Positions 1 through 50,121 of a DNA stretch of 64,000 nt are shown one piece after another; positions within the stretch are counted from its first letter, which is position 1; the number at the start of each line of letters is the position of its first letter. Position numbers and translations under genes: made by a program. The notes under the pieces are model-generated. The model was not told the DNA's origin, did no database searches, and saw only the letters and a program-made list of their open reading frames with translations. The stretch lies in sequence record NC_020077.1. The stretch is one strand, 5' to 3'.

Positions 1-1130
1 CTACCTTTTTCTTAGTCCTGCTATCCTCTTACGTTATACCACCCCTTTTTACGTAAATTTTACGTTTTCCCCTTATTTTGTATTAATAAAGTTTTTGGAA
101 AAATATTTCAAAGACAAATTTTATTTCAATTTTGATCAAAATTCGAATTGACGTGCCGACATTTTCATTTTTTTATACTTCTTCTTTTAAAATTTGGATT
201 AAAAGGAAAAACCTAACGTTAATTTAGGTAAATTTAGAGAAATTGTATTATTAATATTTCACTGAATTTAATTCTCGATTTCATGAGTGATTTCATAAAG
301 TATCTAATATACGATATTATTTCTATTCCTAATAAAAGTTTTTATGATATCAACTTTATATATTCATTTTGAATTTATATATTATCAATACGCTTTTCCT
401 ATTTTTTTATCAATACCTATAGTTTTTTGAATTCAAATAATAAAATTTTTGTGACATATAGTTATTTTCATAAATAATGATATATAGTTATTATTGAAAA
501 TAAGAATATCAATTATAAAAAGTTTTCATGATAATTATTATATCTATTTGATTTTGTAATTAATGATGATATCATTATTTCTAAAAATAGTTGATATAAT
601 AATTTTTATATTTAATTTTTTAAGTGAATAAGTTATAAAATTGTTTTCAAAAATTTTTACATTTTGTTTTTATAGTAATTATTATATCTAGTTTTTATTA
701 TAAATATATATAATTATGATATTATAATTTTTATAATAATTATTTTTTATTGTAAATATGATAATCATGAAATTAACTGATTTGAAAATATATCTCATTT
801 ATAATAAAAAATTCAAATTATATAATTTGAGTGAAATTGAAATTAAAATATGTATAAATGATAAAATTGAATTTTTATAATATCGATATTAAATTTTTTA
901 TCTTAACTTATATGAAAAAGTTTATATCAACTTAAATATGAAAATTCAATTTTCATATTTCAGATTATCAATATAGTTTCAATTTCACATATATTAAATA
1001 AATTCAAAGGTATAAATGTTATCAGATAAGTTTATACTTTTGTATTTATGTTTAATCATATCATTATCATGATATAAATAGTTTATAATATCACTTATTT
1101 TATAATGATAAATAAAAACTCGAAATTCCT
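1..1130. other. Very AT-rich non-coding region, candidate replication origin
   Basis: No ORF in the track; long A/T runs; perfect 16-bp palindrome AATTTTGATCAAAATT at 128-143; precedes about 35 kb of co-oriented plus-strand genes. Origin role is inference. Confidence 0.4.
1063..1121 (+). repeat. 59-bp upstream repeat, copy 1
   Basis: ATTATCATGATATAAATAGTTTATAATATCACTTATTTTATAATGATAAATAAAAACTC; recurs at 2388, 3450 and 4430. Confidence 0.9.
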
Positions 1131-1184
1131 ATCCCTTATTTACTTTCAAGTTAATCTAATGATCTATTGACTTAATCACGTAAA

Positions 1185-1208
1185 TTTCACGATGATAATA
1201 CCGTAAAT
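1185..1208 (+). promoter_or_regulatory. Class I operator palindrome, copy 1 (consensus TTTTACGG-N8-CCGTAAAA)
   Basis: TTTCACGA-TGATAATA-CCGTAAAT; TATA box TTTAAATA at 1222, 13 nt downstream. Confidence 0.8.
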
Positions 1209-1263
1209 GATTAGAAAAAGATTTAAATATCCCTTTTCATAAAAGATATATTAGGAGTAAAAT

Positions 1264-1749
1264 ATGGCCGCACCCGAATTAGAAAACCCCGCCCAGAATA
1301 ATGCGGGGGAAAATTCGAATGAAGTAAATCTTGAAGAAATAATAAAAATAATATACGAAATGCGTAAAATCAGGGAGACGCTAGAACAATTAAAGCAAGA
1401 AGATCTTAATAGCGTTAAAAAACTAATTGTAAAAATTGATAATCAAGTAAAAAAATTAAAACAATTAATTGATGAGCGTGATGATTTACCAGTCATGAAA
1501 ATGGATATTAGCAGTTTAGCTAATTTAACGCAAACTTTAGTTAATAAAATTGTTAATCAAGAAATTAAAATAGAAACTTTATTTTTATTAATTACAGATT
1601 TAGTAAAATTAGTAACTGAAATAAAAACTAAACTAGAAATTAAATACAATATCGATATGAGCGCGGAAGAGATATACAAACTAGCAAGAGATATAGCATA
1701 CGACGTGGATGATTTTATATATTTCTTATATTCTTATTTAAATAATTAA
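1264..1749 (+). CDS. Hypothetical coiled-coil protein with shared N-terminal leader
   Basis: 161 aa; GGAG RBS; heptad-like L/I/K/E pattern; leader MAAPELENPAQNNAG. Confidence 0.75.
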   Translation: MAAPELENPAQNNAGENSNEVNLEEIIKIIYEMRKIRETLEQLKQEDLNSVKKLIVKIDNQVKKLKQLIDERDDLPVMKMDISSLANLTQTLVNKIVNQEIKIETLFLLITDLVKLVTEIKTKLEIKYNIDMSAEEIYKLARDIAYDVDDFIYFLYSYLNN

Positions 1750-1750
1750 A

Positions 1751-1803
1751 CTTTTTTTTTATTTTTGTTTTATACTTTTTCTAAACTTTTTATTATGTTA
1801 TTT
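1751..1803 (+). terminator. T-rich terminator-like repeat, also at about 2984-3041
   Basis: TTTTATTTTTGTTTTATACTTTTTCTAAACTTTTTATT follows both ORF1264 and ORF2589. Confidence 0.6.
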
Positions 1804-1825
1804 TAATTTTATTATGTTATTATAA

Positions 1826-2300
1826 TGTAATGCCGCCCGGCCATTATATCATTATTATATATTGTAATTTTGCCGCAGGCCCATCGCCGCATTTTACATT
1901 ATTATTATATTATACGGGCCCGCCGCCCCGCCATTATTCATTATATAATATTATAATTGCCGCCCCCGCCGCCTATAATTCATTATAATAATATATAATA
2001 ATGAATATGCCGCCGCCTAATCATTATTATAATGTAATGCTGGCCCGCCGCATTTAACATATATTATAATATAATAATGAATATGCCGCAGGCCGGCCCA
2101 TTATTCATTATTATATTATAATTGCCGCAGGCCTTTATCATTATTATAATAATGCCGCCGCCGGCCTGCCGCCGCATTAATCATTATATTATAATAATAA
2201 AATGTATAACTAATATTCATTATTATATATTATATATTGAATATGCCGCCGCGCCTATGCCGCAGGCCCGCCGCCGCCCTAATTACATTATTATAATATA
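1826..2300 (+). repeat. AT/GC mosaic satellite, block 1
   Basis: About 10 GC-rich islands (GCCGC, GCCGCAGGCC) separated by nearly pure A/T spacers such as CATTATTATAAT. Confidence 0.85.
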
Positions 2301-9632: not shown

Positions 9633-11882
9633 TTGTTTTATAACTTTAGTGAAAAGACAGTGTACGCCATTAGACGCAATCGCATAGAAAGCCAAGATTA
9701 TATTAGGCTGATCGAAACGGATAAATTTCCATCTGGCCTGATTAACGAGGCCTCAGCCAGAGAAAAAAGTAGGGGTGGAATGCCACCAATATGGGAAATG
9801 GTTTTTTGGTGGACTAGGAAACCCTTAATAGGGGCTAGAGCAATTATCGCAGCCTCACTACTGCCAGAGTCTGTCGATAAAAGCAAGTTTTTGCGCTTGA
9901 TTAGGCTAGATAGTAATGGATCGGTTGTTTACCATAAATATAATCCAGCTGATATACCCTCGTTAAAGAAGTACTTTAAAAATGCTAAGCTTTTAGACCC
10001 TTTTGCGGGCTTTGGTTCAATACCTTTAGAAGCTATACGGCTAGGCGTAGGGGAAGTTGTGGCCTCTGACCTTTTGCCTACGGCCTACATTTTCCTTAAA
10101 GCCATTTTGGAAATACCTAAATGGGCCAGAGATAATGACCTTCATGAGACACTTATTAAAGATGTTGAGAAATGGGGCAATTGGATAATAGATGAGTTAA
10201 GAAAGGATCCAGAAATTCAGGAACTGTACGATGATGATGCTGATGGTTACATTGGTACATGGGAAATAAGATGCCCACATTGTGGTAATTATACACCGCT
10301 AGTAGGGAGTTGGTGGTTAGCGAGAAAGGTAAATGGGAAAAGAAATAAGAAAGAGAAGGACAATTTTAAAAGACTTGCCTGGATGGTTCCAATTATCGTT
10401 AATAATAAGGTTGATATAGATGTAATTGACCTTAATAAAGAATTATCTAGAGATAAAATAAATGCTAAAGTTGACGCTGGACAAGGGCTTATAGAAGTTT
10501 ATAAAGAAGTAAACGGGATACTTCAGCTTGAAAAAACGTATCAGGTGCAGCAAGCTAACGTAGACATAAAAAGAAATACTGCAAAATGCTTAGTATGCAA
10601 TACTACGATAAAAGGGGGGAGACAATTTTATGTTAAGGATGCGGTGAGGGATTGGAATGAAAACTTAGAAAAATACTTAGCAGGGGAGATAAGTAAAGAG
10701 CAATTATTAAATAGTAAGGCAAGGCCAAGGATAATAGTCAAAATAAAAAAGGGCATAGTTTTTGAGAAGGTAGAAGATCAAGAGAAGTTATGGAAGGCTT
10801 TAGAGATGCTTAAACAAATATGGGGAGATCTTGATATACCTACGGAGCTCGCGCAGAATTATGAAAGTCGTCATATGCCTACTAATTTTGGTGTCGATAA
10901 ATTTTTCAAATTCTTTAACCCACGCCAGCTTTTAACTGCTGTTAAGGTTGTTAAATTACTACGTGAGGTTGGGAAGAGAGTTGAGGAAGAGAAATTAAAA
11001 GTATGGAATAAAGATAAGGCGAGGAAATACGCTGAAGCAATAGTTACTTATTTAACAATGTTATTAGTTAAATATATGTATTATAGTTCGATCGGGACCG
11101 CCTGGGACGCTACTACTGTTAAAAGTTTTGATAGTTTCTCGATGCGTGGACTAAGGGTGATGTGGAATTGGGTAGATATTACTCCTTACAGTAAGCTGAG
11201 CGGATCTTTTGTGAAATCACTGCGCAGTGTATTAAGAGGCCTTCAATACCTTGTTGACGCAATTTCGGACAGCCCTACCAGAGTTAGGGTTTTGTTGGAT
11301 GACGCTACTAAACTAAATAAGATTACAGAGGACTTCGATTTAATAGTTACTGACCCACCATACTGGGATGATGTTGCTTATACAGAGCTTAGTGATTTAT
11401 ATTATGTATGGTTAAAAAGGGCTTTAAGTGATGTTAAGGAAGTTAATGGGGTTTTAATGAGGGTTCCTAAATTTTATCCAGAGGCATTCTTTGATAATGC
11501 TGGGAATGAAATAGAAACTCAATGGAAGAAATTTGCAATTAGAGAAATTAGCAAGTATAGGGGAAGAGTTAAGTACTTTTATAAAAATGGTAATGCTTCT
11601 GAGCATTTAAAATGGTTATTGTCAGAAGCTTTTAAGACAATTGCAGATAGACTAAAGGAAAATGGAATTTTAGTAACGTATTACGCTCACACAATTCCAG
11701 AAGCCTGGAATGCATTTCTAGAAGCTGGCTGGAGTAAGGCAGGTTTAAAGATAACTAAAACGCATTTATTTGTAACAGAATCCAAAACGCGAATTACGGC
11801 GCAAGACAAAATTACAGTAAATACTTCGTTGGTCATAATATGGCGCAAGAGAAAGACGATGGAGAAACTTTTAAAAACATAA
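9633..11882 (+). CDS. DUF1156/COG1743-type adenine-specific DNA methyltransferase with Zn ribbon
   Basis: N-terminal RLIE ... EASAREK ... FWWTRKPL; motif I DPFAGFGSIPLEA; CPHC and CLVC; motif IV TDPPY. Start codon uncertain. Confidence 0.9.
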   Translation: MFYNFSEKTVYAIRRNRIESQDYIRLIETDKFPSGLINEASAREKSRGGMPPIWEMVFWWTRKPLIGARAIIAASLLPESVDKSKFLRLIRLDSNGSVVYHKYNPADIPSLKKYFKNAKLLDPFAGFGSIPLEAIRLGVGEVVASDLLPTAYIFLKAILEIPKWARDNDLHETLIKDVEKWGNWIIDELRKDPEIQELYDDDADGYIGTWEIRCPHCGNYTPLVGSWWLARKVNGKRNKKEKDNFKRLAWMVPIIVNNKVDIDVIDLNKELSRDKINAKVDAGQGLIEVYKEVNGILQLEKTYQVQQANVDIKRNTAKCLVCNTTIKGGRQFYVKDAVRDWNENLEKYLAGEISKEQLLNSKARPRIIVKIKKGIVFEKVEDQEKLWKALEMLKQIWGDLDIPTELAQNYESRHMPTNFGVDKFFKFFNPRQLLTAVKVVKLLREVGKRVEEEKLKVWNKDKARKYAEAIVTYLTMLLVKYMYYSSIGTAWDATTVKSFDSFSMRGLRVMWNWVDITPYSKLSGSFVKSLRSVLRGLQYLVDAISDSPTRVRVLLDDATKLNKITEDFDLIVTDPPYWDDVAYTELSDLYYVWLKRALSDVKEVNGVLMRVPKFYPEAFFDNAGNEIETQWKKFAIREISKYRGRVKYFYKNGNASEHLKWLLSEAFKTIADRLKENGILVTYYAHTIPEAWNAFLEAGWSKAGLKITKTHLFVTESKTRITAQDKITVNTSLVIIWRKRKTMEKLLKT

Positions 11883-13476: not shown

Positions 13477-14253
13477 GTGATGATAGTCAGACTAGTGTCA
13501 TATTCACCTGATGGTGAAAAGGTAGTAGCTATTGCGGCTAAAATGAGTAGGAGTAGGAAAGGTTGGGATTATCATGAAAAAGAAATGACTGATGAAGAGA
13601 TTGAGACATGGATTAGGGATGCAATTCTACATGGGTATTGGTCTGTGTTAGAGCATTCAGTTTATACTTTTTCTATTGAGGGAATTTCTAGGGTTGCGTC
13701 TCATCAGCTTGTTAGGCATAGAATAGCCTCTTATACGCAAATGTCTCATAGGTTTGCTAGGCCAATAGATGAATATTATAAACCAATAATACCTACTAAC
13801 ATTAAAAAGAGGGATGTTCATGAGCTAGTTAACAAAGCTTACAATAATGCTTATGAAATTTATTATGAATTGTTGAAGAGCGGAATACCCGAAGAGGATG
13901 CACGTTATGTTTTACCAAACGCTGTTAATACAAACATCGTAGTAACTATGAATGCTAGGGAATTATATAATTTCTTTTCCCTAAGGCTCTGTTCAAGAGC
14001 TCAATGGGAAATTAGAGCAATTGCATGGAGAATGCTAGAGGAAGTAAAGAAAGTTCACCCAAGATTATTTAGATATGCTGGGCCAAATTGCATAATACAT
14101 GAGAATTTCATAAGAAATGAGTATATAACTTTAGATGATGTGCTTAAAAATCACAATATAGAGTTTATATCTCAAAGATGTATTGAAGGAGTTAATAGGG
14201 ATGGAATTATAAAATGCATCATTAACTCACGTGGAGTTATTGACTCGAGGTGA
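13477..14253 (+). CDS. thyX: Flavin-dependent thymidylate synthase
   Basis: [27 protein letters not shown] (RHRx7S motif), [14 protein letters not shown]. Confidence 0.97.
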
Positions 14254-14272
14254 AGTGATGAAAACATATTTA

Positions 14273-14312
14273 CGAATTTCGAACTTGTGCTATATACAGG
14301 GACTTCGAACTT
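14273..14312 (+). repeat. 40-bp dispersed element, copy 1
   Basis: CGAATTTCGAACTTGTGCTATATACAGGGACTTCGAACTT. Confidence 0.9.
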
Positions 14313-14484
14313 TTATTGCTAAAATTTTCCCTTTCTTAAATCTCATGAGGACGAGAAAAATTCGTGACGGTAGCAAATTTGCAGAAATGTCATGCCAGTT
14401 CTACAATTTTACCAAATCCCCCTTTTCCCCCTTTTTAAGTCTAGATAAGTCTAAAAGGGAAAAGATGAATAGAGGTAAGAAGAG

Positions 14485-15360
14485 ATGGCAGACACAATGA
14501 AGATCGTTTTAGGACTTTCTGATAACAGAGTGAAGTTATGGGAGTTAGGTGTGCCATTAATGATTAATCAGTTGGTGTGGGACAGTGTAGAATGGGAAAA
14601 TGAAACGTGGGTAGATTCTGGTGGCTATCAAATAATGGTTAAAAAAATGCAGATTAGTGTAGATGCCGTATTGGATAAATACAAGAGGCTTGATGCAGAC
14701 TATTACATTAGCCTCGATATACCTGCAACACCTTGCGAAAAGCCTTCAGAGCTTAATTTCAAGCATTTTGAGTACCTATACACGAGACTGGATAAGAATA
14801 TAATACCAGTCATTCACGCTTATGATGTTGAAAGTATTAAAAAGGCTATTGATTTCTACTCTCAATATACGGATTATATCGCATTTGGTGGGATAGTTCC
14901 ACCATCTCTTAATAAGGTAGCTAGCCAAAAGCTAGCAGTTGCAATGTACCGCCTTGTTAGGAAAGAATGGAAGGGTAAAATTCACGTTTTAGGTGCTGGT
15001 TCTCCTTTCATGAGAAAGGTTTTTTATGATGCTGATAGTGTTGATACATCAACTTATAGAGTAAAGGCAATACATGGTATGGTGTTATTGCCTGGAAAAG
15101 GAGAAAGGTATGTTGGAGAGAGAAAAATAAGTTGGGGGGCTAGACGAATTAGTGAAGATGAACTTGAATCGCTAAAGGCTTTTCTAGAGAAAACTCACTA
15201 TCCATTTCCTATTAGGTTTGATAATTGGATGGATAGATCACTTGTTAACGCATGGGTTTTGTTACACAGTGAGTATGAGGAAGATAATCCTCTTATCAGA
15301 TATGCACACAACATAACAGACCCAGAGGCTGAGATAAATGAGTTATGTAGAAAGCTGTGA
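14485..15360 (+). CDS. dpdA: DpdA-like DNA-guanine transglycosylase (7-deazaguanine insertion)
   Basis: TGT-fold motifs DSGGYQ, LDIP, PVIH, FGG, HVLG and DSVDTST; lacks the CxCxxC zinc site of tRNA TGTs. Confidence 0.85.
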   Translation: MADTMKIVLGLSDNRVKLWELGVPLMINQLVWDSVEWENETWVDSGGYQIMVKKMQISVDAVLDKYKRLDADYYISLDIPATPCEKPSELNFKHFEYLYTRLDKNIIPVIHAYDVESIKKAIDFYSQYTDYIAFGGIVPPSLNKVASQKLAVAMYRLVRKEWKGKIHVLGAGSPFMRKVFYDADSVDTSTYRVKAIHGMVLLPGKGERYVGERKISWGARRISEDELESLKAFLEKTHYPFPIRFDNWMDRSLVNAWVLLHSEYEEDNPLIRYAHNITDPEAEINELCRKL

Positions 15361-15895
15361 ACACTTAGAGAAATATCTTGGCTCAAATAATGAACCAATA
15401 ATAAAAAAGCCCGGCTTTGACCCATTCCAACACCCTGTCGTAAGGAAATGGCATGAGTACTTTCTCAATAACTGGCATTCCAAAAAAGAAATAGCGCTTT
15501 TACTGCCCTGCACATCAGTTAAGCCTTATAATAGGTCAGCTACTCATAAATTAGCATACTCGTTATTGAGAAAGTATAAACTTGAGGATAAGGTTCAGGT
15601 TTACTCTGTCTCCGAGCCGATGTTGTTAGTCCCTAGAGAGTTAGAGAACTGTTACCCTTTCAATTCTTATGATTATCCTCCTTCTTTAATGACTGAAGAA
15701 GAAAAACAAGAGTTCATCAGCCTACTTTCCATTGCACTCTCTCATGTCCACAATATCCATAAGAGAATAATCGCAGTTTTGCCTAAACATCATTACAAGA
15801 TAGTTTATGAGGCTTCTAAAAACATCCCAATCGAACTTTATCCTTATGGCAAATTAGCTTTTAAAACGATAGCAAATGTTATAATGAAGATATGA
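15338..15895 (+). CDS. DUF5591 / ArcS-like (archaeosine synthase-type) protein
   Basis: LLLPCTSVKPYNRSATH and SEPMLLVPRELENCYPFNSYDYP match the PCxxxKPYxxSxxH and VPRELE..YP..YD motifs; overlaps dpdA by 23 nt. Confidence 0.8.
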   Translation: MSYVESCEHLEKYLGSNNEPIIKKPGFDPFQHPVVRKWHEYFLNNWHSKKEIALLLPCTSVKPYNRSATHKLAYSLLRKYKLEDKVQVYSVSEPMLLVPRELENCYPFNSYDYPPSLMTEEEKQEFISLLSIALSHVHNIHKRIIAVLPKHHYKIVYEASKNIPIELYPYGKLAFKTIANVIMKI

Positions 15896-16056: not shown

Positions 16057-16377
16057 ATGTCAGAGGTGGAGCGCCTAAAACCTGTAACCTTTAAGTGTGA
16101 AGATAGTCTGTTTTTAAAGCTAGAGGAAGAGGCTAAAAAAGCTAACGTCGCTAAAACTAAAATTATAAGAGAGGCATTAGCGAAGCTTTTACAACATGAC
16201 ATTGAGGAAATAAGGGAGTTAAGTAGAGGAACTCCTCCCTATTCAGGCAAGCGTGTAGTTTCAATAAGGCTTCCCGAAAGCCTTAATACTCAGTTAGAGA
16301 TTGCTGCAGAAAAAATAAGGTCTAACAAGAGTGACCTGATAAGGGCTGCTTTAGCAGCCTACTTCAGGTTAGTGTAA
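16057..16377 (+). CDS. Two-RHH protein
   Basis: VTFKCEDSLFLKLEEEAKKANVAKTKIIREAL and VSIRLPESLNTQLEIAAEKIRSNKSDLIRAAL. Confidence 0.85.
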   Translation: MSEVERLKPVTFKCEDSLFLKLEEEAKKANVAKTKIIREALAKLLQHDIEEIRELSRGTPPYSGKRVVSIRLPESLNTQLEIAAEKIRSNKSDLIRAALAAYFRLV

Positions 16378-16379
16378 GG

Positions 16380-17450
16380 GTGATGAAAATGGCGTATTTA
16401 TACTTGCAGCTACATAAATCTTTATTAAAGAAAGTAAAGAAAGAAGCGTCACGTTTAAATGTAAAACGAAAACTTTTGATGAGTGCTGCAATTCAAGCGT
16501 TTGTCGAAAACCCGCCAGAAACCATAAATCTACCGCCAGACTTGAATAACGGATTTGAACTGACAATTGGCGTTACCTTAGAACTGCCTAAAGATGTTAT
16601 AGAAAAGATTTATTCTTACACTATATCAAAAGCTCTTTCGGTAAAAAAAGTAGCGGAGATAGCGATAACTACTTTTCTTAGCCTTTCTGATGAACAGAAA
16701 ATGATCTATATAGATAAGGAGATAAAAAGACTTGAAGAGAAGAGAAAGAGAAAACTAAGCGAAGAGCGTATGTTTCAATTTCTGGAAAGTATTGCTTCAA
16801 AAGATCCTTCTCGATCAGTTCGAATAAGTTTTAAATGTGTAGATGACTTACATAAACTACTTGAAAACGAAGCACGTGAAAGGGGAACAACAGCGAGTGA
16901 GCTTATAAGAGGTGCTGTTGAAGAATTTTTACAAAACTACTATAAGGGCAAGATAAAAATAAGAAAGCTGTATGAGGCTGCTAAAGACTCGCATTATAGC
17001 AAAGCTGGGGACAAAGTATATGACCTAAAAGTACCTACATATATTCTATTACATTTAATGGAAATAGCTGATAATGTGAAGTTGTCTGTGGCTATGCTTA
17101 TTCGTCTTGCCATAATGAGATACTTGAAGCTGGTTGACATGCAGCCGCGAAAACGAGTCAGATTCGCATGTGCGGCTAGTCTTATTTTAATGATAGAGGA
17201 GGAGGTTAAAAAAACTAACACCGCAAAAGACGCAATTATAAAGGAGGCAGTGAAACAACTTTTACAGCATAGTGTCGATGAGATAAGGGAGTTAAGCAGA
17301 AAAACTTCTCCCTATTCGGGCAGCTATGAAGTTTTCATAAAGCTTCCTGAGAGCCTTGTCGTACAACTAGATGCTATTGTAAGAAAAGTAAGGACTAGTA
17401 GAAGCAATCTCATACGGACTGCATTGGCAGCTTATTTCAAGTTAGTGTAA
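16380..17450 (+). CDS. Six-RHH protein
   Basis: Six strand-helix-helix units; the last two are paralogous to ORF16057 and ORF21029. Confidence 0.85.
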   Translation: MMKMAYLYLQLHKSLLKKVKKEASRLNVKRKLLMSAAIQAFVENPPETINLPPDLNNGFELTIGVTLELPKDVIEKIYSYTISKALSVKKVAEIAITTFLSLSDEQKMIYIDKEIKRLEEKRKRKLSEERMFQFLESIASKDPSRSVRISFKCVDDLHKLLENEARERGTTASELIRGAVEEFLQNYYKGKIKIRKLYEAAKDSHYSKAGDKVYDLKVPTYILLHLMEIADNVKLSVAMLIRLAIMRYLKLVDMQPRKRVRFACAASLILMIEEEVKKTNTAKDAIIKEAVKQLLQHSVDEIRELSRKTSPYSGSYEVFIKLPESLVVQLDAIVRKVRTSRSNLIRTALAAYFKLV

Positions 17451-17452
17451 GG

Positions 17453-18547
17453 GTGGCAAAGATGGCATATTTACACTTTATAATGCGCAACTCTCTACTT
17501 AAAAAGGTAAACGAAGAAGCTACCCGCTTAAATGTAAAACGAACACTTTTAATGAAAGCTGCAATTCGGGCGTTTATTGAAAACCCTCCAGAAACCATAC
17601 AACCGTTACCAAATGCAATCGGCGGATTTGGACGAAAAGAAACAACACAAATTTTCTTAACACTGCCAGAAGACACTTTAGAAAAGATTTATTCTTACGC
17701 CACTGCAAAAGGACTATCAATAAGAAAGGTAGCGGAGAAGGCAGTAGCTGATTTCCTTAACTTGTCTGATGAACAGAAACTAATTTATATAAATAAGGAG
17801 ATGGAAAGACTTATAGAGAAGAGAAAGGGAAAACTAGACAAAGAGTCTACACTACAATTGCTAGAGCCCGAGGCTTCAAAAGATCCTTCTCTGCTGGTTC
17901 CAATAAGTTTTAAATGTATAGATGATTTACGTAAACTACTTGCAAAAGAAGCACATGAAAGAGGAACAACGGCGAGTGAACTTGTAAGAAGAGCTGTTGA
18001 AGAATTTTTACGAAAACATGGTGATAACCTTGAGGAAATCAAAAAGCTGCATGAGGCTACTAAAGACTTGTATTATAGCGAAGTTGAGGACAAAATATGT
18101 ACTTTAAAAATGCCAGCGTATATGGCAGTACAATTGGCAAAAATAGCTAATAAGATGAATGTGTCTAAGTCTGCGTTAATTCGCCTTGCGATCGTGAAAT
18201 ATCTGAACCTGAGTGACACAAAGCCACAAAAACAAACAGAGCCACAAAAACACATAAGCTTCGGGTGTGCGGCTAGCCTTGTTTCAATGTTAGAAGAAGA
18301 GTCTAAAAAAGCTAACACCGCAAAAGCTGCAATTGTAAGGGAGGCAGTAACGAGGCTTTTACAGCATAGTGTTGATGAGATAAGAGAGTTAAGTAGAAGA
18401 AATCCGGCTTGTTCAGCCGACTATACAGTTTCCGTAATGCTTCCTGAGAGTCTTAATACTCAGCTAGATATTATTGCAGAAAAAGTAAGGACTACTAAGA
18501 ACGATCTGATGAGGACTGCATTAGCAGTTTATTTCTGGTTGGTATAA
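17453..18547 (+). CDS. Six-RHH protein
   Basis: Colinear paralog of ORF16380. Confidence 0.85.
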   Translation: MAKMAYLHFIMRNSLLKKVNEEATRLNVKRTLLMKAAIRAFIENPPETIQPLPNAIGGFGRKETTQIFLTLPEDTLEKIYSYATAKGLSIRKVAEKAVADFLNLSDEQKLIYINKEMERLIEKRKGKLDKESTLQLLEPEASKDPSLLVPISFKCIDDLRKLLAKEAHERGTTASELVRRAVEEFLRKHGDNLEEIKKLHEATKDLYYSEVEDKICTLKMPAYMAVQLAKIANKMNVSKSALIRLAIVKYLNLSDTKPQKQTEPQKHISFGCAASLVSMLEEESKKANTAKAAIVREAVTRLLQHSVDEIRELSRRNPACSADYTVSVMLPESLNTQLDIIAEKVRTTKNDLMRTALAVYFWLV

Positions 18548-18558
18548 GGGTGATATAA

Positions 18559-19770
18559 ATGGCATCTATCGAGTTCATTATCCCTGAAACATTATTAGAT
18601 AAAGTAAAGGAAGAGGCAAAACGATTTTATGTTAGTGACAAACTTCTGATGAAGGCTGCTATTATTGCATTTATTGAAAATTCTACTGATGCTATAAAAC
18701 CATTACCACTTAATTATAATAAAAAAGAAGAAGAGTTGAAACTTATTCGCTTAGACTTACCAGAAGATATTGCGCAAAAGGTTCATCTTTACAGCAAGAT
18801 AAAAGGATTTCCGATTCGAAGGATCATTAGTAGTATGGTAGATAACTTCCTTAATCTTAATGATGAACGGAAAAAGTTCTATATAGATGAATTAAAAACA
18901 ATACTACCTAGCCTTAAAGTTGGTGCTTGGCGTATAATAAAACTGAAAGAAGCTTTAGCTTCAGGAAATCTTGATTCGCTAATTCAAGTAAGCTTTAAGT
19001 GTAATAAAGAGTTATACGTACTGCTTAAGGACGAGGCATTGAGAAAACATATAATGATAAATGTACTTGTAAGGCAGGTTGTTGATGATTTTGTGCAAAA
19101 GTATGGTGATAATCATGAGGTAATAAAAAAGATGCATAAAGTTGCTAATCACCTCTTTTATGGAAAGATTAACGATAGGGCTCTCGATGTAGAGTTGTCC
19201 GCACGTGTCTTACTGCAATTGGAAAAAATTTCGAGACAGACGCTAGTTTCTAAAAACGATATTATTCGCCTTGCGATTATGAGTCATTTGAATTTACTGA
19301 ACGAGAGCGTCCTTGAACGGCCAATTTTTATAAAAAACGATCTACCACAACAAAATAATAAAGACAACCAGGCACAGACAGATAGTTTTATTAATATACT
19401 GTTGCCAAATAAACTTTACAATTTATTAAAGAGATATGTAATGCCTAACTACGAAGCCAATAAGGAAAGAGAGATTAAGTCTGTAGTCAGTAATGTTGTG
19501 ACAGAAGTAATAACACAGTGGGCAAAAGAGCGTTTTTCCGAAAGCGGCGATGTTGAAACTTACGTAGTATGGCAAATAATTTTGGGCGATTTAAAAATGA
19601 GCTTTTACCCTAGCCTAAAAAGAGGCACAATAGTAAAGAAGCAAGATATCCTAGATGCGATGAAGAATATAAAATATGTATTAGATGAAACAAGGTTATT
19701 TAAAACCTTTAAGGAACGCGGTTATCTAGAGGAGATCGATAATGATAATGTTAAGATTCTACTTCTGTGA
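18559..19770 (+). CDS. Five-RHH protein with C-terminal winged-helix-like domain
   Basis: Four RHH units, an extended fifth (FINILLPNKLYNLLKRYV), and a C-terminus ending FKERGYLEEIDNDNVKILLL. Confidence 0.8.
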   Translation: MASIEFIIPETLLDKVKEEAKRFYVSDKLLMKAAIIAFIENSTDAIKPLPLNYNKKEEELKLIRLDLPEDIAQKVHLYSKIKGFPIRRIISSMVDNFLNLNDERKKFYIDELKTILPSLKVGAWRIIKLKEALASGNLDSLIQVSFKCNKELYVLLKDEALRKHIMINVLVRQVVDDFVQKYGDNHEVIKKMHKVANHLFYGKINDRALDVELSARVLLQLEKISRQTLVSKNDIIRLAIMSHLNLLNESVLERPIFIKNDLPQQNNKDNQAQTDSFINILLPNKLYNLLKRYVMPNYEANKEREIKSVVSNVVTEVITQWAKERFSESGDVETYVVWQIILGDLKMSFYPSLKRGTIVKKQDILDAMKNIKYVLDETRLFKTFKERGYLEEIDNDNVKILLL

Positions 19771-19785
19771 GTTTTTCGCCAACTT

Positions 19786-20865
19786 TTGGTGATGAAGATG
19801 GCATATTTAGACTTTTATATGCATAATTCTTTATTAAATAAAGTAAAGGAAGAAGCAAAACGGCTTAATGTAAGTGACAAACTTCTGATGAAGGCCGCTA
19901 TTATTGCATTTGTTGAAAATCCTACCGATTCTATAAAACCATTACCAGATGGTAATCATAACAACGGAAAGGTAGTAAGAGTTATCATAAAGCTTTCAGA
20001 AGACATTATCAATAAATTTATACTTTATGCGAAGTCCAAAAATGCTACAATTAAAGAAGTTGCTGAAAATGCGATAGCTAACTTCCTTACTCTAGGCGAT
20101 GAGCAGAAAAGGCCCTATATAGAAGAAGAAAAAAGGCAGTTAGCCGAAGCTAGGAAAAAATTAGCTGAACTTAATAAAAAGGAAATGCAAAAGAAGTCTT
20201 CAACACAGCTGCAAGCTGATATAGGGCCAAACAGCCTTATTATAATGTCCTTTAAATGCAATCCTAACTTATACAAACTACTTGAAAATGAGGCAATGAA
20301 AAGACGCGTAGCAGTTGCAGAGCTCATAAGAAATGCTGTTGCGGATTTTCTACAGAAATATGGGAATAATTATGATGAAATTATTAGATTATATTTTGCG
20401 GTCGATCTCTTCTTTTCTAAAAATAATACGAGTAATATTGGTACTAAAATATGTATCGTAAAAATGCCAGCATATATGGCATCAGAATTAGAAAAAATTG
20501 CAAGACAAACATCAGTCACAAAAAGTGGTGTTATTCGCCTTGCGATTATGAACCATTTGAATTTGTTAAATGGAAGTGTCACAGAACAACAGAAGATTAC
20601 ACAAAATGAGGCAGCAAATGATCCGCCTAATGATCCGCCACAACAAAATAATAAAGATGAACTCTTACGAGCAAGTCGTTTTATTAGTGTGTCTTTACCA
20701 GAACCACTTTATAATTTACTAAAGAAATATGTAATGCTTAAGTATAATGTTAATAAGGAAAGAGAGATTAAGTCTATAGTCAGTAACATTATAGCAGAAG
20801 TATTGGCACAGTGGTCACAAGAGCATTTCTCCAAAAGCGGCGATGTTGAAACTCGTGTTCGGTAA
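19786..20865 (+). CDS. Five-RHH protein, C-terminal domain missing
   Basis: Matches 18559 and 21351 up to GDVET, then stops (GDVETRVR*). Confidence 0.8.
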   Translation: MVMKMAYLDFYMHNSLLNKVKEEAKRLNVSDKLLMKAAIIAFVENPTDSIKPLPDGNHNNGKVVRVIIKLSEDIINKFILYAKSKNATIKEVAENAIANFLTLGDEQKRPYIEEEKRQLAEARKKLAELNKKEMQKKSSTQLQADIGPNSLIIMSFKCNPNLYKLLENEAMKRRVAVAELIRNAVADFLQKYGNNYDEIIRLYFAVDLFFSKNNTSNIGTKICIVKMPAYMASELEKIARQTSVTKSGVIRLAIMNHLNLLNGSVTEQQKITQNEAANDPPNDPPQQNNKDELLRASRFISVSLPEPLYNLLKKYVMLKYNVNKEREIKSIVSNIIAEVLAQWSQEHFSKSGDVETRVR

Positions 20866-20950
20866 ACCTTGTCATGTCAGTTCTGCAAATTTACCAAAGT
20901 CCCTTTTTCCCCTTGTGTCTTTTCTTACTACCGTTTATGATTTTGCGTAA

Positions 20951-20995
20951 TTTTACGTATTTGACTATGAAGCTCATGGTAGAAAGTTTTATAAG
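20951..20995 (+). promoter_or_regulatory. Class II promoter; 20890-21028 duplicates 15920-16056
   Basis: TTTTACGT at 20951, TAGAAAGTTTTATAAG at 20980. Confidence 0.85.
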
Positions 20996-21028
20996 CTTAA
21001 ATGGTCACAGTAATAGTCGGTAGGAAAA

Positions 21029-21349
21029 ATGTCAAGTAAAGAGTATTTAAAACAAACAAGCTTTAAGTGTGAGGATAGTCTGTTTTTAAAGACTGAGGAA
21101 GAGTCTAAAAAAACTAATACTACAAAAGCCACAATTGTAAGGGAGGCAGTGAAACAACTTTTACAGCATAGGGTCGATGAAATAAGGGAGTTAAGTAAAA
21201 AAACTTCTCCCTATTCAGGTGGCTATATAGTTTCCATAATACTTCCTGAGAGTCTCAACGCCCAACTAGATGCTATTGCAGGAAAAGTAAGGACTAGTAG
21301 AAGCAATCTCATACGGACTGCATTAGCAGCCTATTTCAGGCTAGTTTAG
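21029..21349 (+). CDS. Two-RHH protein
   Basis: 106-aa paralog of ORF16057; its 3' part is nearly identical in DNA to the end of ORF16380. Confidence 0.85.
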   Translation: MSSKEYLKQTSFKCEDSLFLKTEEESKKTNTTKATIVREAVKQLLQHRVDEIRELSKKTSPYSGGYIVSIILPESLNAQLDAIAGKVRTSRSNLIRTALAAYFRLV

Positions 21350-21350
21350 C

Positions 21351-22634
21351 GTGATGAGAATGAAGTCTCTGATCTTCATCATCCCTAACGCCTTGTTAGA
21401 TAAAGTAGTAGAAGAGGCAGAACGGCTTGGTGTATCTGGTGCGCTTTTGATGAGGGCGGCTATTATTGCATTTGCCGAAAATCCTATCTACTTTATAGAA
21501 CCACTGCCACCCAATTATAATAAAGAGGAGTTAAAAGGAATTTCTTTAAAATTACCCGAAGATATTATAAAGAAGATTCATCTTTATGCCAACTCAAGAG
21601 GATTTTCGATCAGGAGAATAGTTTGGAGCATGATAGATCACTTTCTTACTCTTGATGATGAGCAGAAAATGTTTTATATAAAAAAAGTAAAAGAAATATT
21701 ATCTAGAACTAGGATTGGGCGAAAACGCAAAACAAAACTACAAGAGACTATTGTTTTTGGAGATCTTAACGCGTTAGTTGGGACAAGCTTTGCGTGTAGT
21801 AACGAGTTGCACAACCTCATTGAGAATGAAGCAATAAAAAAACACATAACAATAAGTGAGCTTATAAGAGAGACTATTAATGAGTTTTTGAAAAAATATA
21901 GTAATAATTTTGAGGAAATCAGAAAGCTGCATGAGACTGCTAGCAATTTATTTTCTGGAGAGGATCCTCAAAGAGTGATCACTGTAAAGTTACCTGCACA
22001 TGTTTTACTGCAATTGGAAAAAATTTCGGGAAAGACACTAGTTCCTAAAGGCATTATTATTCGTCTCGCAATTATGAACCATTTTAATTTACTGAATAGA
22101 ATCGTCACAAAACAACGGAAGGCCACACAAAATGAAGCAGCAAATGATCCGCCTGATGATCCGCCACCACAAAATTATAAACCCAAACCTAGATGGGCAG
22201 GAGGTTTTGTCAGTGTGTTGTTACCAGAACCACTTTATGACTTACTGAAAGAGTATGTAATGCTTAAGTATCATCGCGGTTTTATACTAAGCATTAATGA
22301 AGTCATTAGTGAAGTTACGATTAAGTTTGAAGTTAGCGAAATTGCAACAAAAATATTGAAACAGTGGGCAAAGAGACGATTCTCTGGAAAGTCTGACGTT
22401 CAAACTTACGTAGTATGGCAAATAATTTTGGGCGATTTAAAAATGAGCTTTTACCCTGGCCTAAAAAGAGGCACAATAGTAAAGAAGCAAGATATTCTAG
22501 ATGCGATGAAGAATATAAAATTAAAATCTGTCATAAACAAAACGGAGTTGTTTGAGGAGTTGTTTGAGATATTTAAGGAACGCGGTTACCTAAAGGAGAT
22601 CGATAATGATAATGTCAAGATTTTACTTCTGTGA
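21351..22634 (+). CDS. Five-RHH protein with C-terminal winged-helix-like domain
   Basis: Paralog of 18559; 3' DNA (about 22404-22634) is nearly identical to about 19560-19770. Confidence 0.8.
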   Translation: MMRMKSLIFIIPNALLDKVVEEAERLGVSGALLMRAAIIAFAENPIYFIEPLPPNYNKEELKGISLKLPEDIIKKIHLYANSRGFSIRRIVWSMIDHFLTLDDEQKMFYIKKVKEILSRTRIGRKRKTKLQETIVFGDLNALVGTSFACSNELHNLIENEAIKKHITISELIRETINEFLKKYSNNFEEIRKLHETASNLFSGEDPQRVITVKLPAHVLLQLEKISGKTLVPKGIIIRLAIMNHFNLLNRIVTKQRKATQNEAANDPPDDPPPQNYKPKPRWAGGFVSVLLPEPLYDLLKEYVMLKYHRGFILSINEVISEVTIKFEVSEIATKILKQWAKRRFSGKSDVQTYVVWQIILGDLKMSFYPGLKRGTIVKKQDILDAMKNIKLKSVINKTELFEELFEIFKERGYLKEIDNDNVKILLL

Positions 22635-27692: not shown

Positions 27693-28211
27693 ATGATTTT
27701 CAGTGATAGAGATTTAAAATATTACCTGGAAAAGGGATGGATAAAGATTGAGCCATTAAGAGAAGACACTATTAGGGAAAATGGGGTAGATTTAAGGATT
27801 GGTAACGAGATTGCTAGATTCAAGAAAAATAGGATTTTTGATCCTGACAAAGATTCCATAGATGATTTTATAGAGAAAGAGGTGGGGAATGAGTTTATAA
27901 TAAATCCCCATGAGCATGCATTATTAACTACAGAAGAATATGTAAGATTGCCTAATGATGTAATGGCATTCGTAAATCTTAGATCAACATTTGCTAGGTT
28001 AGGTCTTTTCATTCCTCCAACTATCGTAGATGCAGGATTTGAAGGGCAATTAACTATAGAGTTAGTAGGATCAGAATTCCCAATAAAACTAAAATATGGA
28101 ATGAGATTTATCCACCTAATCTTCGCAAAAACACTAACACCAGTTGAAAAGCCATATAATGGAAAATATCAGAAACAAATGGGTGTGACGCCGGCCAAGC
28201 TCTCAAGTTGA
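27693..28211 (+). CDS. dcd: dCTP deaminase / dUTPase family protein
   Basis: [46 protein letters not shown]. Confidence 0.92.
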
Positions 28212-46839: not shown

Positions 46840-47463
46840 TTATTTGAAATGTGCCTTGATGAATTCCAACACACCCCCTACAACTTTAAGCATCTTAAGC
46901 GAATAATCAAAAAAGTACTCTGCATGTAGAGCTTCTTCAAGGTTTTTCTCGTTCACATTAAATAGTGTCATTATCTCTTGATAAAGCATCGTGCCCCTAA
47001 TACGTAGTAAAAGGGCCTTAGTCTTCTCGATTATTACCTGGTATGCCTTCAGTTTTGTCAAGTATTCAGACTTCTCCTTGTAAACTGTTTCCAGGTGTGA
47101 TAAGATGTTCGAGGCTTCATTAACAACTGCCTCAATGTTATAATCACTCGTATCTACAGTATCAATCACTAAATTTGTAATTGCTGGATTATTAGAAAAT
47201 AAGGCAACACATAATTTTATAACATGAGCGCGCTGTACAGCTTTGTCATTAGTGCTCTCAAGAACCTTCTTAGTTTTTTCAAATAATGGCCTTAAATGTG
47301 GGTATGTTGATAAGAATAGTAATAGGCTGTTGTAAACTGATATTGGGTGAGAAGATATTGTTAAGCTATTACACATGTTTAGTGCGAGAGAGATAGCGTC
47401 TTTTCGTTTATCAAGATCTTGTGGTGCTGCTTCAGGCAAAAGATAATCTAGTTCGTCACTCAT
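46840..47463 (-). CDS. Hypothetical helical protein
   Basis: 207 aa, overlaps the stop of the ParB-like gene. Confidence 0.75.
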   Translation of the reverse strand: MSDELDYLLPEAAPQDLDKRKDAISLALNMCNSLTISSHPISVYNSLLLFLSTYPHLRPLFEKTKKVLESTNDKAVQRAHVIKLCVALFSNNPAITNLVIDTVDTSDYNIEAVVNEASNILSHLETVYKEKSEYLTKLKAYQVIIEKTKALLLRIRGTMLYQEIMTLFNVNEKNLEEALHAEYFFDYSLKMLKVVGGVLEFIKAHFK

Positions 47464-48443
47464 CTTTGATCATCATCATGACTTCTAATATTCTTCAAAA
47501 CTTTCTTAGGTAATTCAGCTTCAAACACAGGCAGAAGTGCATCATAAAGTTGTTTTGGCAATACTACAATAGCGCCGTTCTTTGCCCTTTCTTCAATGCT
47601 ACTAATGTAATCATCAAGCTTTGTGATATTAATCAATCTTGTTCTTTTCTTAAACTTCTTTACCTTTTCACGCAACTTATTTTCCATTAGTTCCTTCACA
47701 GTTTTCATATATTCGTCTTTATCCTTGATCTGTGAGAGAAGTAGTTTATATTTAGAAAAGAAAGATGGGCCATTCTGCAGAAGTAAGTCTACATCTTCTT
47801 TTGTTAACCTCTCGCGTACGGGTATAGGGATTGCTTTGGCCATCGCTGAAACGTTAGTAGGGTAGAGGTTGTGGTATTTCAGATACTCGCTTAGCTTTCT
47901 GAAGAGAACTGGATATTTTTTGAAGTGTTTTATTATTAAATCAAAAGTTCTTACGCTTAAGTCAACATTAGTCTCTTCAAGTAGCTCTAGAGTGTTATGA
48001 TATGAGAGATTCACCCTTTCTCTCAACTCTTGTAATTTAGAATAGTATTCAAGCAATTGGCCCCTATCTATTGCCTTCCTAACGAAATTGACTGCGTAAG
48101 CTATTAGTTCTAGCTGATCTTCTGAACCATACACTATTCTGACTGGAATCATTACTTTATCCCATTTTCCATCATAAAGCTCACGTAATGCATAATATCT
48201 AACGTAACCATCAATCAATAGAAAACGATCTTTGCTTGTCTTATCTTCTGTTACGATGAGGGGTTGAAGAAGTGATTCGTTCTGTATGCTTTCTTTCATT
48301 TTTTGGATTTCATCTTCTCTTCTCGGGAAAAGCGTTGCAAACTTAGGATGCTCAAAAATGTACGATAAGGGAACGTTTGTTGAAACTGTGTTAGAAAGTA
48401 TGTTAAGCTCTCTGAGTTTATCTAGCAATTCTACTGTTGCCAC
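47460..48443 (-). CDS. ParB/Srx-domain protein
   Basis: SIQNESLLQPLIVT ... LLIDGYVRYYALREL ... N is a ParB N-terminal motif set. Confidence 0.85.
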   Translation of the reverse strand: MATVELLDKLRELNILSNTVSTNVPLSYIFEHPKFATLFPRREDEIQKMKESIQNESLLQPLIVTEDKTSKDRFLLIDGYVRYYALRELYDGKWDKVMIPVRIVYGSEDQLELIAYAVNFVRKAIDRGQLLEYYSKLQELRERVNLSYHNTLELLEETNVDLSVRTFDLIIKHFKKYPVLFRKLSEYLKYHNLYPTNVSAMAKAIPIPVRERLTKEDVDLLLQNGPSFFSKYKLLLSQIKDKDEYMKTVKELMENKLREKVKKFKKRTRLINITKLDDYISSIEERAKNGAIVVLPKQLYDALLPVFEAELPKKVLKNIRSHDDDQR

Positions 48444-48531
48444 GTGATGTTATTATGCTTTAAATGCTTAAATATTTGCCTCTGAAAAAAATGCGAAATA
48501 TAAAGAAAAATTGTGAATTGAATTCACAAAA

Positions 48532-50121
48532 TTATGAAATAAGCTTTGAATTAATTGTATCTATAAAATCTCTAAAACCTTGCTCGTCACTAATTATTGT
48601 TGGTGGGGGTTTTAAATCTTTCGCCAACTTCGTGTATTGTATCATATCTTGTTTACAATTTGTTTCCGCTGGGAAGCATATCTTTCCAGCATCAAAAGGT
48701 AAATCAAGCGTATTTGCCAAAATCGCTAAGAATGTTCTATAAACACTGTAAGGATCATAAGGATTTTCTGCAATAAGGCTTGCAATTGTTGATTGCAGTT
48801 TTGCTCTTAGCAAATCGTCGTAAAACGTGGTTGTTGAGATTTGCGCTATTTTCATCAATTCAACAGCCATATCACCAATTATCAACACAAACTTACTACT
48901 CTCTGTTTGCAATAAATGATCTAATACTTCAAGGTAGTATTGAGTGAATTTAGGCAGTGTGATTACACTAAGTGCATCTCTGAATAGCTCTACGGTGTTG
49001 AAATAGTCCAGCGGAGTAGCGCCAATTGTTGGAGTGAAAAGCGGCTTATTACAAACTTCGCTGAAGTATGCAACTACAAGTGTTTTATATAATGGGACAT
49101 ACCTTGTTACAAAGGAAATACGTAAGGGTGTAGAATCACACTTTATTCCTAAATTTTCTTGGAAGAAGCGAGTTAATAGTCTCTTTCCTTCATCTGGTAT
49201 AGGCTTTTGTGTAATTAGCCTTGATACTCCCCTCGTGTTTTCCATACTTCCAGTGTATGCTCCAAGTATAAGGATTTGCTCAATCATCCTAAAGGAAAGG
49301 CCTCGATTTACTGCTAATCTAGCAAACTCGTCAATTCCTAATTCCATGCCTTTGAATTTCACAGTCTTAATGCCTTTGAGATTAAGATAAGCTTGTATCG
49401 CTTCGTAGTCTGGCAATGGAAATGGCACTTGAATGTTGAAACGTGAAACAATTGCTTGATCTAGGGTATCAAGCTTCACGTTTGTTGTTGCAATTATTGA
49501 AATATGCTGTTTAGTTCTTTTCCATAAATTAAGCCTCTCTAAAACTTGGTTTATCAAATTTAAAGTAAGTGTTCCATATCCTTCTTCAGCACTCGTTGGC
49601 CTAGTACGTAAAAGCCATTCGCCATCATCAAAAACGACGATTGAAGGTTGTTCGCTCTCAGCTTTAATAAAAAGTTCTTCTAAGTTCTTTTCCGATTCGC
49701 CTACAAATTTACTCAAGAATGAATAAGGCCTTATCCAGACTGTTGTGAAACCATAGTACTTTGAAAGAATTTCGGCAATACTTGTTTTTCCAGTTCCTGG
49801 CGCGCCATACAAAAGAACTGATTGGAAAGGCTTCTTTAGGAGAATATCGATTACATCTCCTATTTCCTTTGGGAAAATATAGTAATCAACATTTTCTGGG
49901 CTGACTACTCTATAAATATGATTAAAGCGCAAGTTCTCTCTATCAATCTTAACATCAGAAATTAACTTTATGTTGCCTGGATTAGCAGCAAACCACGTTT
50001 GGTTGAAAACGCAAGGGTCTGGCTCAACAAAACGTACACCTTCAGTTTCAGAAGAAATTACTTGCCCATCTTTAATACTCCTAGTGGTGATAAGCTTTTC
50101 GCAAATCTCCATCCTTACCAC
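48532..50121 (-). CDS. AAA+ ATPase (ATV p529-like)
   Basis: Walker A GAPGTGKT, SKFVGESEK, Walker B VVFDDGE, sensor TTN, arginine finger SRF. Confidence 0.92.
   Translation of the reverse strand: MVRMEICEKLITTRSIKDGQVISSETEGVRFVEPDPCVFNQTWFAANPGNIKLISDVKIDRENLRFNHIYRVVSPENVDYYIFPKEIGDVIDILLKKPFQSVLLYGAPGTGKTSIAEILSKYYGFTTVWIRPYSFLSKFVGESEKNLEELFIKAESEQPSIVVFDDGEWLLRTRPTSAEEGYGTLTLNLINQVLERLNLWKRTKQHISIIATTNVKLDTLDQAIVSRFNIQVPFPLPDYEAIQAYLNLKGIKTVKFKGMELGIDEFARLAVNRGLSFRMIEQILILGAYTGSMENTRGVSRLITQKPIPDEGKRLLTRFFQENLGIKCDSTPLRISFVTRYVPLYKTLVVAYFSEVCNKPLFTPTIGATPLDYFNTVELFRDALSVITLPKFTQYYLEVLDHLLQTESSKFVLIIGDMAVELMKIAQISTTTFYDDLLRAKLQSTIASLIAENPYDPYSVYRTFLAILANTLDLPFDAGKICFPAETNCKQDMIQYTKLAKDLKPPPTIISDEQGFRDFIDTINSKLIS

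Follow-up and report, generated by a model that had tools for sequence, protein, structure and literature searches.

The locus described here, positions 13,477 to 15,895 of a stretch of 64,000 nucleotides from sequence record NC_020077.1 (the window), raises the question of whether a virus can mark its DNA with a modified base that it has no genes to make and, if so, which base is set and from where it is drawn. Three genes lie on it: thyX, a gene whose product resembles the tRNA-guanine transglycosylases (TGTs), and a gene for a DUF5591 protein. An original prediction, made from the sequence alone, took the three together as a minimal 7-deazaguanine DNA-modification module, likely for archaeosine (G+), with the caveat that a similar pair might have been noted for Sulfolobus virus STSV2. 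The window is in fact STSV2 itself (JQ287645/NC_020077; 100% identity and the same coordinates over this 2.4-kb stretch, which is 96% identical to STSV1 and 93% identical to an STSV4 fragment). The viral pair is already known, having been catalogued in 2019, when STSV1 (YP_077211/YP_077212) and STSV2 (YP_007348259/YP_007348260) were listed as DpdA/ArcS carriers among deazaguanine-gene viruses that include two Bicaudaviridae and twelve Ligamenvirales (Hutinet 2019), and chemically tested in 2023 (PMC10516641). The reading favoured by the present analysis, with a probability of about 0.7, is that the TGT-like STSV2_15 and the DUF5591 protein STSV2_16 are a two-gene unit for post-replicative DNA base modification, which derives from a host, uses a base of the host and leaves 2'-deoxy-7-carboxy-7-deazaguanosine (dCDG) in the viral DNA as a self-mark. 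Of the module first proposed, the DpdA-type enzyme, the stand-alone ArcS core and the lack of precursor genes have been retained, while archaeosine and the membership of thyX have been given up.

The sequence statements of that prediction were all borne out. The TGT-fold motifs DSGGYQ, PVIH, HVLG and DSVD were located at residues 44, 108, 167 and 184 of the 291-aa STSV2_15, which has two cysteines only (84 and 288) and no CxCxxC zinc site; in the alignment of its family no cysteine column is conserved. The protein has no Pfam match and matches the TgtA model TIGR00432 weakly (20 bits against a cut-off of 350), but falls in PHROG 887, named 'queuine tRNA-ribosyltransferase' (E=6e-56), together with the validated DpdA of phage CAjan (E=8e-96) and a homologue from Sulfolobus tengchongensis. 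When 27 viral and cellular homologues were aligned, D44, S45, G46, G47, Q49, D78, P108, H111, G135, H167, G170, S185 and D187 proved invariant. The profile of this alignment found a sole relative among solved structures, the archaeosine TGT (ArcTGT) of P. horikoshii (1iq8, E=7e-4), in which D95, D130 and D249 correspond to D44, D78 and D187, and Gln169 (motif IQGS) is replaced by H111; this histidine of PVIH aligns also with PCFH of the CAjan enzyme. Moreover, the GGIVP loop aligns with GGVVP, which forms the ArcTGT pocket of the type that binds 7-cyano-7-deazaguanine (preQ0) (PMC5699537). The use of a family profile was required, as phmmer with STSV2_15 as a single sequence returned spurious WD40 matches only from the PDB. 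The AlphaFold2 model (mean predicted local distance difference test, pLDDT, 91.2) shows a TIM barrel followed by a C-terminal helical region, with neither a PUA domain nor the C1-C3 domains by which tRNA is bound, and its top Foldseek matches are ArcTGT (1j2b/1iq8) and bacterial TGTs, all with a probability of 1.0.

The profile comparison with CAjan DpdA (hhalign; probability 95%, E=3e-8, 219 columns) is the closer of the two, and it reaches the C-terminal region beyond the part aligned with ArcTGT. CAjan gp35, of the DpdA1 type, thus shares with STSV2_15 a length of about 300 aa, the TGT TIM barrel, three aspartates and the histidine, the C-terminal region, PHROG 887 and the absence of a zinc site. 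The two differ in that identity is only about 21%, CAjan carries folE, queD, queE, queC and a preQ0 transporter, none of which is found in STSV2, and the STSV2 clade has close chromosomal relatives in archaea. Because the validated CAjan enzyme also lacks CxCxxC, the missing zinc site is normal for a phage-type DpdA; it is the bacterial DpdA (bDpdA) that is defined by such a site. In the S. Montevideo DpdA, which has the site CXCX2CX22H and needs the ParB-like ATPase DpdB, D95, D130 and D256 are catalytic or base-binding and H181 stands where tRNA TGTs have Gln (PMC10164549). STSV2_15 therefore has of the DpdA features the TGT fold, the three aspartates, the histidine for glutamine and the relatedness to a validated DpdA, the zinc site being absent, and departs from ArcTGT in model score, zinc site, C1-C3/PUA domains and Gln169. 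These data support a zinc-less, DNA-type guanine transglycosylase, for whose exchange of guanine in DNA the dCDG of STSV2 virions (PMC10516641) is indirect evidence. The possibility of a split ArcS, of which the protein would be the N-terminal domain, was rejected, as all the catalytic aspartates are kept and the ArcS model is unmatched, with TgtA weakly matched. The second ATG, at 14497, is probably the start of the gene, because homology with STSV1 begins there and the host homologues all start with MK(I/V).

The second gene was likewise described correctly, as a DUF5591 protein with PCTSVKPY (from residue 57) overlapping the TGT-like gene by exactly 23 nt. STSV2_16 matches DUF5591 (PF17884, E=8e-20) and the structure of AF0587 (PDB 2q07, E=4e-8), covering only positions 273-403 of the 575-position NCBIfam model of ArcS (73 bits against a cut-off of 440). 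Of the canonical ArcS, the TGT-like Nt domain, C2, PUA, the RaSEA partner and the G+ product are all missing. The stand-alone enzyme has been renamed ArcS2, and its intact PC-X3-KPY-X2-S-X2-H motif has been remarked for STSV2 (PMC10516641); here the motif reads PCTSVKPYNRSATH (residues 57-70) and is kept in every Sulfolobales host copy, with Cys58 as the candidate catalytic residue. Both genes of the pair are under purifying selection among STSV1, STSV2 and STSV4, with ratios of nonsynonymous to synonymous substitution (dN/dS) of 0.07-0.11 (about 0.1 for dpdA and 0.07-0.10 for ArcS2). The overlap suggests translational coupling, and it is found also in STSV1 and in host chromosomal pairs (20-44 nt).

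The only DpdA and ArcS2 pair so far tested by experiment is that of Vibrio phage nt-1, which has the DNA transglycosylase and the stand-alone DUF5591 core in common with STSV2, and whose ArcS2 works in E. coli on DNA, downstream of DpdA2. This phage has preQ0 genes and gives dPreQ0 with a little deoxyarchaeosine (dG+), whereas STSV2 gives dCDG; the ArcS2 motif is degenerate in nt-1 and intact in STSV2 (PMC10516641). For STSV2, liquid chromatography with ultraviolet and tandem mass-spectrometric detection (LC-UV-MS/MS) of virion DNA, the very check that the original prediction had proposed, gave dCDG at 149 per 10^6 nt (0.04% of G) but not dG+ (PMC10516641), so that 'likely archaeosine' is contradicted. 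By arithmetic this means about 23 modified bases per genome of 152 thousand nucleotides, or about 10-25 per genome, a level compatible with a rare sequence motif. The origin of dCDG and the source of the base were left unexplained (PMC10516641).

As regards the precursor, the lack of the genes folE, queD, queE and queC, which had been stated for the window, is true of the whole 76-kb virus, where no radical-SAM gene was found either. Pfam matches among its 47 hypothetical proteins are limited to ribbon-helix-helix, MazE-like and one sub-threshold ParB_N domain, and the annotated proteins comprise methyltransferases, sugar enzymes, an integrase and a dCTP deaminase. S. islandicus REY15A supports growth of STSV2, and S. 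islandicus is listed with FolE, QueD, QueE, Gat-QueC and Arc-TGT WP_012711831 (Hutinet 2019, Supplementary Table 2), for which reason a supply of the base by this host is plausible.

By analogy with the chemistry of TGTs and DpdA, Asp187 of STSV2_15 would attack C1' of a target deoxyguanosine, presumably at a specific site, and guanine would leave. Asp44 would then activate the incoming 7-deazaguanine base, taken from the cell by a virus with no precursor genes; Asp78, His111 and the GGIVP loop would hold it in a pocket like that of ArcTGT, which would suit preQ0. In a second step, following insertion, Cys58 of STSV2_16 would attack the nitrile of DNA-bound preQ0, giving a thioimidate, which would most likely be resolved by water, as in nitrilases, unless an amidine product is formed and hydrolyses at about 75-80 C; either way dCDG would result. 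That tRNA is not required agrees with the ArcS of T. kodakarensis, which accepts the bare preQ0 nucleotide (PMC11298593). Resolution by hydrolysis is favoured because there is no RaSEA and dCDG is the product measured. The virus would probably be placing the host's own mark on its DNA, thereby passing as self, and the modification may in this way be protective.

Three other explanations have to be weighed. The one that survives best, unlikely as it is, is that DpdA directly inserts free 7-carboxy-7-deazaguanine (CDG), the product of QueE, which is expected to be available in hosts with Gat-QueC, with ArcS2 having another role or none. dCDG was the sole species detected (PMC10516641), and the nt-1 DpdA2 has been suggested to be promiscuous; furthermore, the entries for the hosts give QueE together with Gat-QueC and not plain QueC. 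Nevertheless, the GGIVP loop resembles a pocket for preQ0 (PMC5699537), and ArcS2, on which purifying selection acts, overlaps dpdA in all cases in the STSV and host genomes, which argues for a coupled two-step reaction.

Even less probable is the formation of dG+ in DNA, with DpdA inserting preQ0, ArcS2 amidating it and dCDG arising by breakdown or depending on the host. The fully conserved ArcS motif of STSV2_16 would agree with it, as would the dG+ obtained in E. coli with the nt-1 ArcS2 and DpdA2, and the authors of the 2023 work still favour a dG+ activity for the STSV2 ArcS2; however, the STSV2 DNA itself was without dG+ and the yield with nt-1 was only 4-7 per 10^6 nt (PMC10516641). Moreover, what the original prediction stated on the conversion of preQ0 to archaeosine by ArcS-type enzymes is outdated, since the ArcS of T. 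kodakarensis adds lysine to the nitrile, making preQ0-Lys, and its radical-SAM partner RaSEA is needed for G+ (PMC11298593); STSV2 has no radical-SAM gene.

Several points also weigh against the reading preferred here, of a host-derived unit that hydrolyses DNA-bound preQ0. To our knowledge, no restriction activity keyed to a deazaguanine mark is known in Sulfolobales. The level of modification is very low, as might be due to a rare motif, to a side reaction or to partial activity. The T. kodakarensis ArcS is inactive without RaSEA (PMC11298593), of which the virus has none, and S. tengchongensis has been said to encode no protein of the queuosine (Q)/G+ pathway (data not shown; Cui 2023, PMC10516641), which would leave the source of the base unexplained.

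The origin of the pair bears on this last point. S. tengchongensis, the natural host, and S. islandicus, the laboratory host, encode close homologues of both genes, although the 2023 paper reported no related host genes (PMC10516641), and this changes the starting point for what has been an acknowledged puzzle, namely the source of the deazaguanine and the reason for the dCDG product. Homologues of STSV2_15 with 50-71% identity were found on megabase chromosomes, among them those of S. tengchongensis, Saccharolobus caldissimus, S. islandicus, S. solfataricus and S. shibatae, as well as of Sulfuracidifex, Sulfurisphaera, Acidianus and Stygiolobus, together with corresponding homologues of STSV2_16 (55-67% identity). 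Overlapping pairs 61-71% identical stand at syntenic sites in S. tengchongensis, S. islandicus, S. caldissimus and Sulfuracidifex, and the genes overlap as in STSV2 and have the same neighbourhood in S. tengchongensis, S. tepidarius, S. caldissimus and S. islandicus. The host locus is a conserved core chromosomal locus, neither a provirus nor a variable island. In a maximum-likelihood tree the STSV clade lies within the Sulfolobales clade, with Saccharolobus, S. tengchongensis and Aramenus as its neighbours, and the rudiviruses, which carry the transglycosylase without ArcS2, form a separately nested clade on a long branch; because the two nest separately, transfer went from host to virus at least twice. 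The tree and the synteny show the viral pair to be a recent capture from a Saccharolobus/Sulfolobus-like host chromosome. Contigs with a rudivirus-type DpdA (SIRV-like, 40% identity) were also met in culture-collection assemblies from the bacteria Streptomyces gamaensis, Planomonospora alba, Paenochrobactrum glaciei and Nocardioides koreensis (loci L029, L030, L049 and L051), and they almost certainly stem from contamination with archaeal-virus DNA.

In the hosts, the pair is followed by genes for a DUF87/HerA-like ATPase, a large protein, a 229-aa protein and a NurA-domain protein (Table 1). With hidden Markov models built from the host genes and run on 48 further genomic loci, the six genes were found colinear in most Sulfolobales loci with enough flanking sequence, and linked in other orders elsewhere: DpdA-ArcS2-NurA-HerA-AAA in a metagenome-assembled genome (MAG) of Desulfurococcales, HerA-DpdA in Thermoproteaceae-type MAGs and, in Caldivirga, DpdA adjoining a convergent HerA. 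An archaeal ArcS2-DpdA-HerA-large ATPase order was found also on a contig labelled Thermogutta sp. MAG23, from a planctomycete bin, which has probably been mis-binned. Among the loci scanned, the linkage was absent from those of Ignisphaera, Pyrobaculum and Thermoproteus. A scan of contigs with the single peptide pattern WVDSGGYQ missed known carriers, such as S. tengchongensis, and is therefore not a census.

The assignments of NurA, DUF87 and AAA_22 were confirmed with Pfam. The HerA-like protein is distinct from the canonical repair HerA, scoring 103 bits where the cut-off is 800, and the large protein (1011 aa in the example modelled) has Walker A and B motifs and an AlphaFold model of low confidence (pLDDT 63), in which only an ORC/Cdc6/DnaA-like AAA+ N-terminus can be interpreted. 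No PADLOC model corresponds to the viral or host pair, to the 1011-aa protein or to the NurA-like protein, weak matches never being to Dpd. Also, no homologue of HerA, NurA or the large AAA+ protein was found when these were searched for in STSV2, whose STSV2_48 is a classical AAA+ ATPase. A radical-SAM gene syntenic with the host pair was considered as RaSEA and not counted as such, as it belongs to TIGR04084 (SPASM type) and archaeosine-synthase models are absent from the best 25 of its 76 matches. This gene, of the radical SAM/SPASM 'AF0577 family', lies about 8 kb upstream of the pair in four genera, and the sole solved DUF5591 structure, AF0587 of A. fulgidus, stands ten locus numbers from AF0577; the TIGR04084 protein is a possible functional link, as a substitute for RaSEA.

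The position of the host pair beside HerA-like, AAA+ and NurA-like genes suggests a system by which the host marks its own DNA and which the virus would mimic. The logic is that of the bacterial Dpd island (dpdA-dpdK, S. Montevideo), in which a chromosomal DpdA and a DpdC converting preQ0 to an amide stand beside ATPase, helicase and nuclease genes (PMC10164549), but the archaeal neighbours are not homologous to DpdD-K. It is possible, and proposed here tentatively, that the DpdA-like, ArcS2, HerA-like, roughly 1000-aa AAA+, 229-aa and NurA-like proteins form a DNA 7-deazaguanine system, an archaeal counterpart of the bacterial Dpd system which would mark host DNA and the nuclease half of which would act on unmarked DNA, and that the marking half was stolen by STSV-type viruses, and the transglycosylase alone by rudiviruses, to disguise their genomes. 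A possible sub-variant is that the true base is a preQ0-Lys adduct missed by targeted LC-MS, dCDG being the remnant of its hydrolysis. In the literature searched, nothing was found that ties deazaguanine to HerA/NurA, or DpdA to Sulfolobales chromosomes, so that the host pair and this linkage seem to be unreported. Should the host mark its own DNA with a 7-deazaguanine, it would be the first example of such a system from the cells of archaea, and the capture of the transglycosylase by two unrelated virus families would be explained. The host cluster and its linkage are a new lead, of modest probability, that can be tested, and directly so, S. islandicus being genetically tractable and supporting STSV2.

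The simplest reading of the host pair is that it has a role on DNA, in addition to the tRNA pathway, because S. islandicus is listed with Arc-TGT and Gat-QueC, and archaea with G+, which is present in the tRNA of S. acidocaldarius and S. tokodaii (PMC11298593), possess the pathway as far as ArcTGT; WP_012711831 is not among the accessions listed for the 294-aa host protein. The least probable of the alternatives, that the viral pair is a minimal ArcTGT/ArcS acting on tRNA, boosting or altering host archaeosine during infection and leaving dCDG in DNA as a side reaction, agrees with the database name, with ArcTGT as the best solved match, with ArcS being a tRNA enzyme and with the very low DNA modification, but has against it the missing zinc site and C1-C3/PUA domains, the histidine for Gln169, the nearer relationship to CAjan DpdA, the canonical Arc-TGT and Gat-QueC already listed for S. 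islandicus, the linkage of the host copy to HerA and NurA DNA enzymes in several orders, and the presence of a deazaguanine in virion DNA (PMC10516641). With the archaeal tRNA pathway of ArcTGT and ArcS/RaSEA, STSV2 shares the ArcS C1 motif as well as the fold of the transglycosylase and its catalytic residues, whereas in STSV2 there is no zinc site, PUA or C-terminal domain or RaSEA, Gln169 has become His, and it is DNA that has been found modified. In addition, no tRNA genes were found in the window.

As for thyX, it has no part in deazaguanine chemistry. Its product is a genuine FAD-dependent thymidylate synthase (Thy1, PF02511, E=1e-67, above the cut-off; TIGR02170, 207 bits against a cut-off of 88; motif RHR-X7-S at residues 80-90), which would merely provide dTMP. 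The three-gene module is not upheld, because in STSV1 an ORF17 with its own annotated TATA box, and in STSV4 two ORF17 paralogues, intervene between thyX and dpdA, and because thyX occurs without dpdA in the archaeal viruses ARV1, SRV, SMV3 and ATSV; the gene is a mere neighbour, and the conserved unit is the overlapping pair. In STSV2 the two genes are 231 nt apart, and 66 bases of the spacer and dpdA start, found by blastn against STSV1 and STSV4 to be unique to STSV2, take the place of the STSV1 ORF17. A TATA-like TTTTTAAG within them is a putative promoter element. The start codon of thyX is ambiguous, the annotated one being the ATG at 13480 and not the GTG at 13477. Together with a dCTP deaminase-like protein, STSV2_30, thyX makes up a viral route towards dTTP, which fits a genome of 35% GC.

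Table 1. Position of the genes and other features discussed, in the window unless a host locus is named
Feature	Position	Strand	Remarks
Low-GC region	1-2000		21% GC, about 35% elsewhere
DNA methyltransferase	9633-11882	+	
thyX (STSV2_13)	13477-14253	+	258 aa
thyX-dpdA spacer	14254-14484		contains STSV2_14
STSV2_14	14258-14500	+	annotated 80-aa hypothetical protein
Bases unique to STSV2	14431-14496		66 bases
TATA-like TTTTTAAG	14432-14439	+	read from sequence
GAGGT before ATG	14472-14476	+	read from sequence
STSV2_15 (TGT-like)	14485-15360	+	291 aa; annotated 'queuine tRNA-ribosyltransferase'
dpdA/ArcS2 overlap	15338-15360	+	23 nt
STSV2_16 (DUF5591, ArcS2)	15338-15895	+	185 aa; annotated hypothetical
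STSV2_17 to STSV2_23	16057-22634	+	seven paralogues
STSV2_30	27693-28211	+	dCTP deaminase-like
STSV2_47 and STSV2_48	47460-50112	-	ParB_N (sub-threshold) and AAA+ ATPase
DNA methyltransferase	60933-62171	-	
Host locus, upstream			DsbH-like thioredoxin, short-chain dehydrogenase, TENA
Host locus, downstream			DUF87/HerA-like ATPase, about 1010-aa protein, 229-aa protein, NurA-domain protein
Host TIGR04084 gene	L002:1530-2582	-	also in L003, L006 and L085

Other features of the virus deserve mention. STSV2 has three DNA methyltransferases, the third of which lies outside the window, and one of the three, a large DUF1156-type enzyme (PADLOC MTase_II, 618 bits), is no more than 2.6 kb upstream of the deazaguanine pair; several DNA-modification systems are therefore stacked in this virus. 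STSV2_47, with a sub-threshold ParB_N match (22.3 bits against a cut-off of 26.3), adjoins STSV2_48, whose Walker motif reads GAPGTGKT, and the two could be a distant functional analogue of DpdB or, equally, an ordinary partition or packaging pair. Directly downstream of ArcS2 follow STSV2_17 to STSV2_23, of which the three scanned or translated consist of repeated ribbon-helix-helix modules. Finally, the first 2000 nucleotides of the window are of very low GC content (Table 1).

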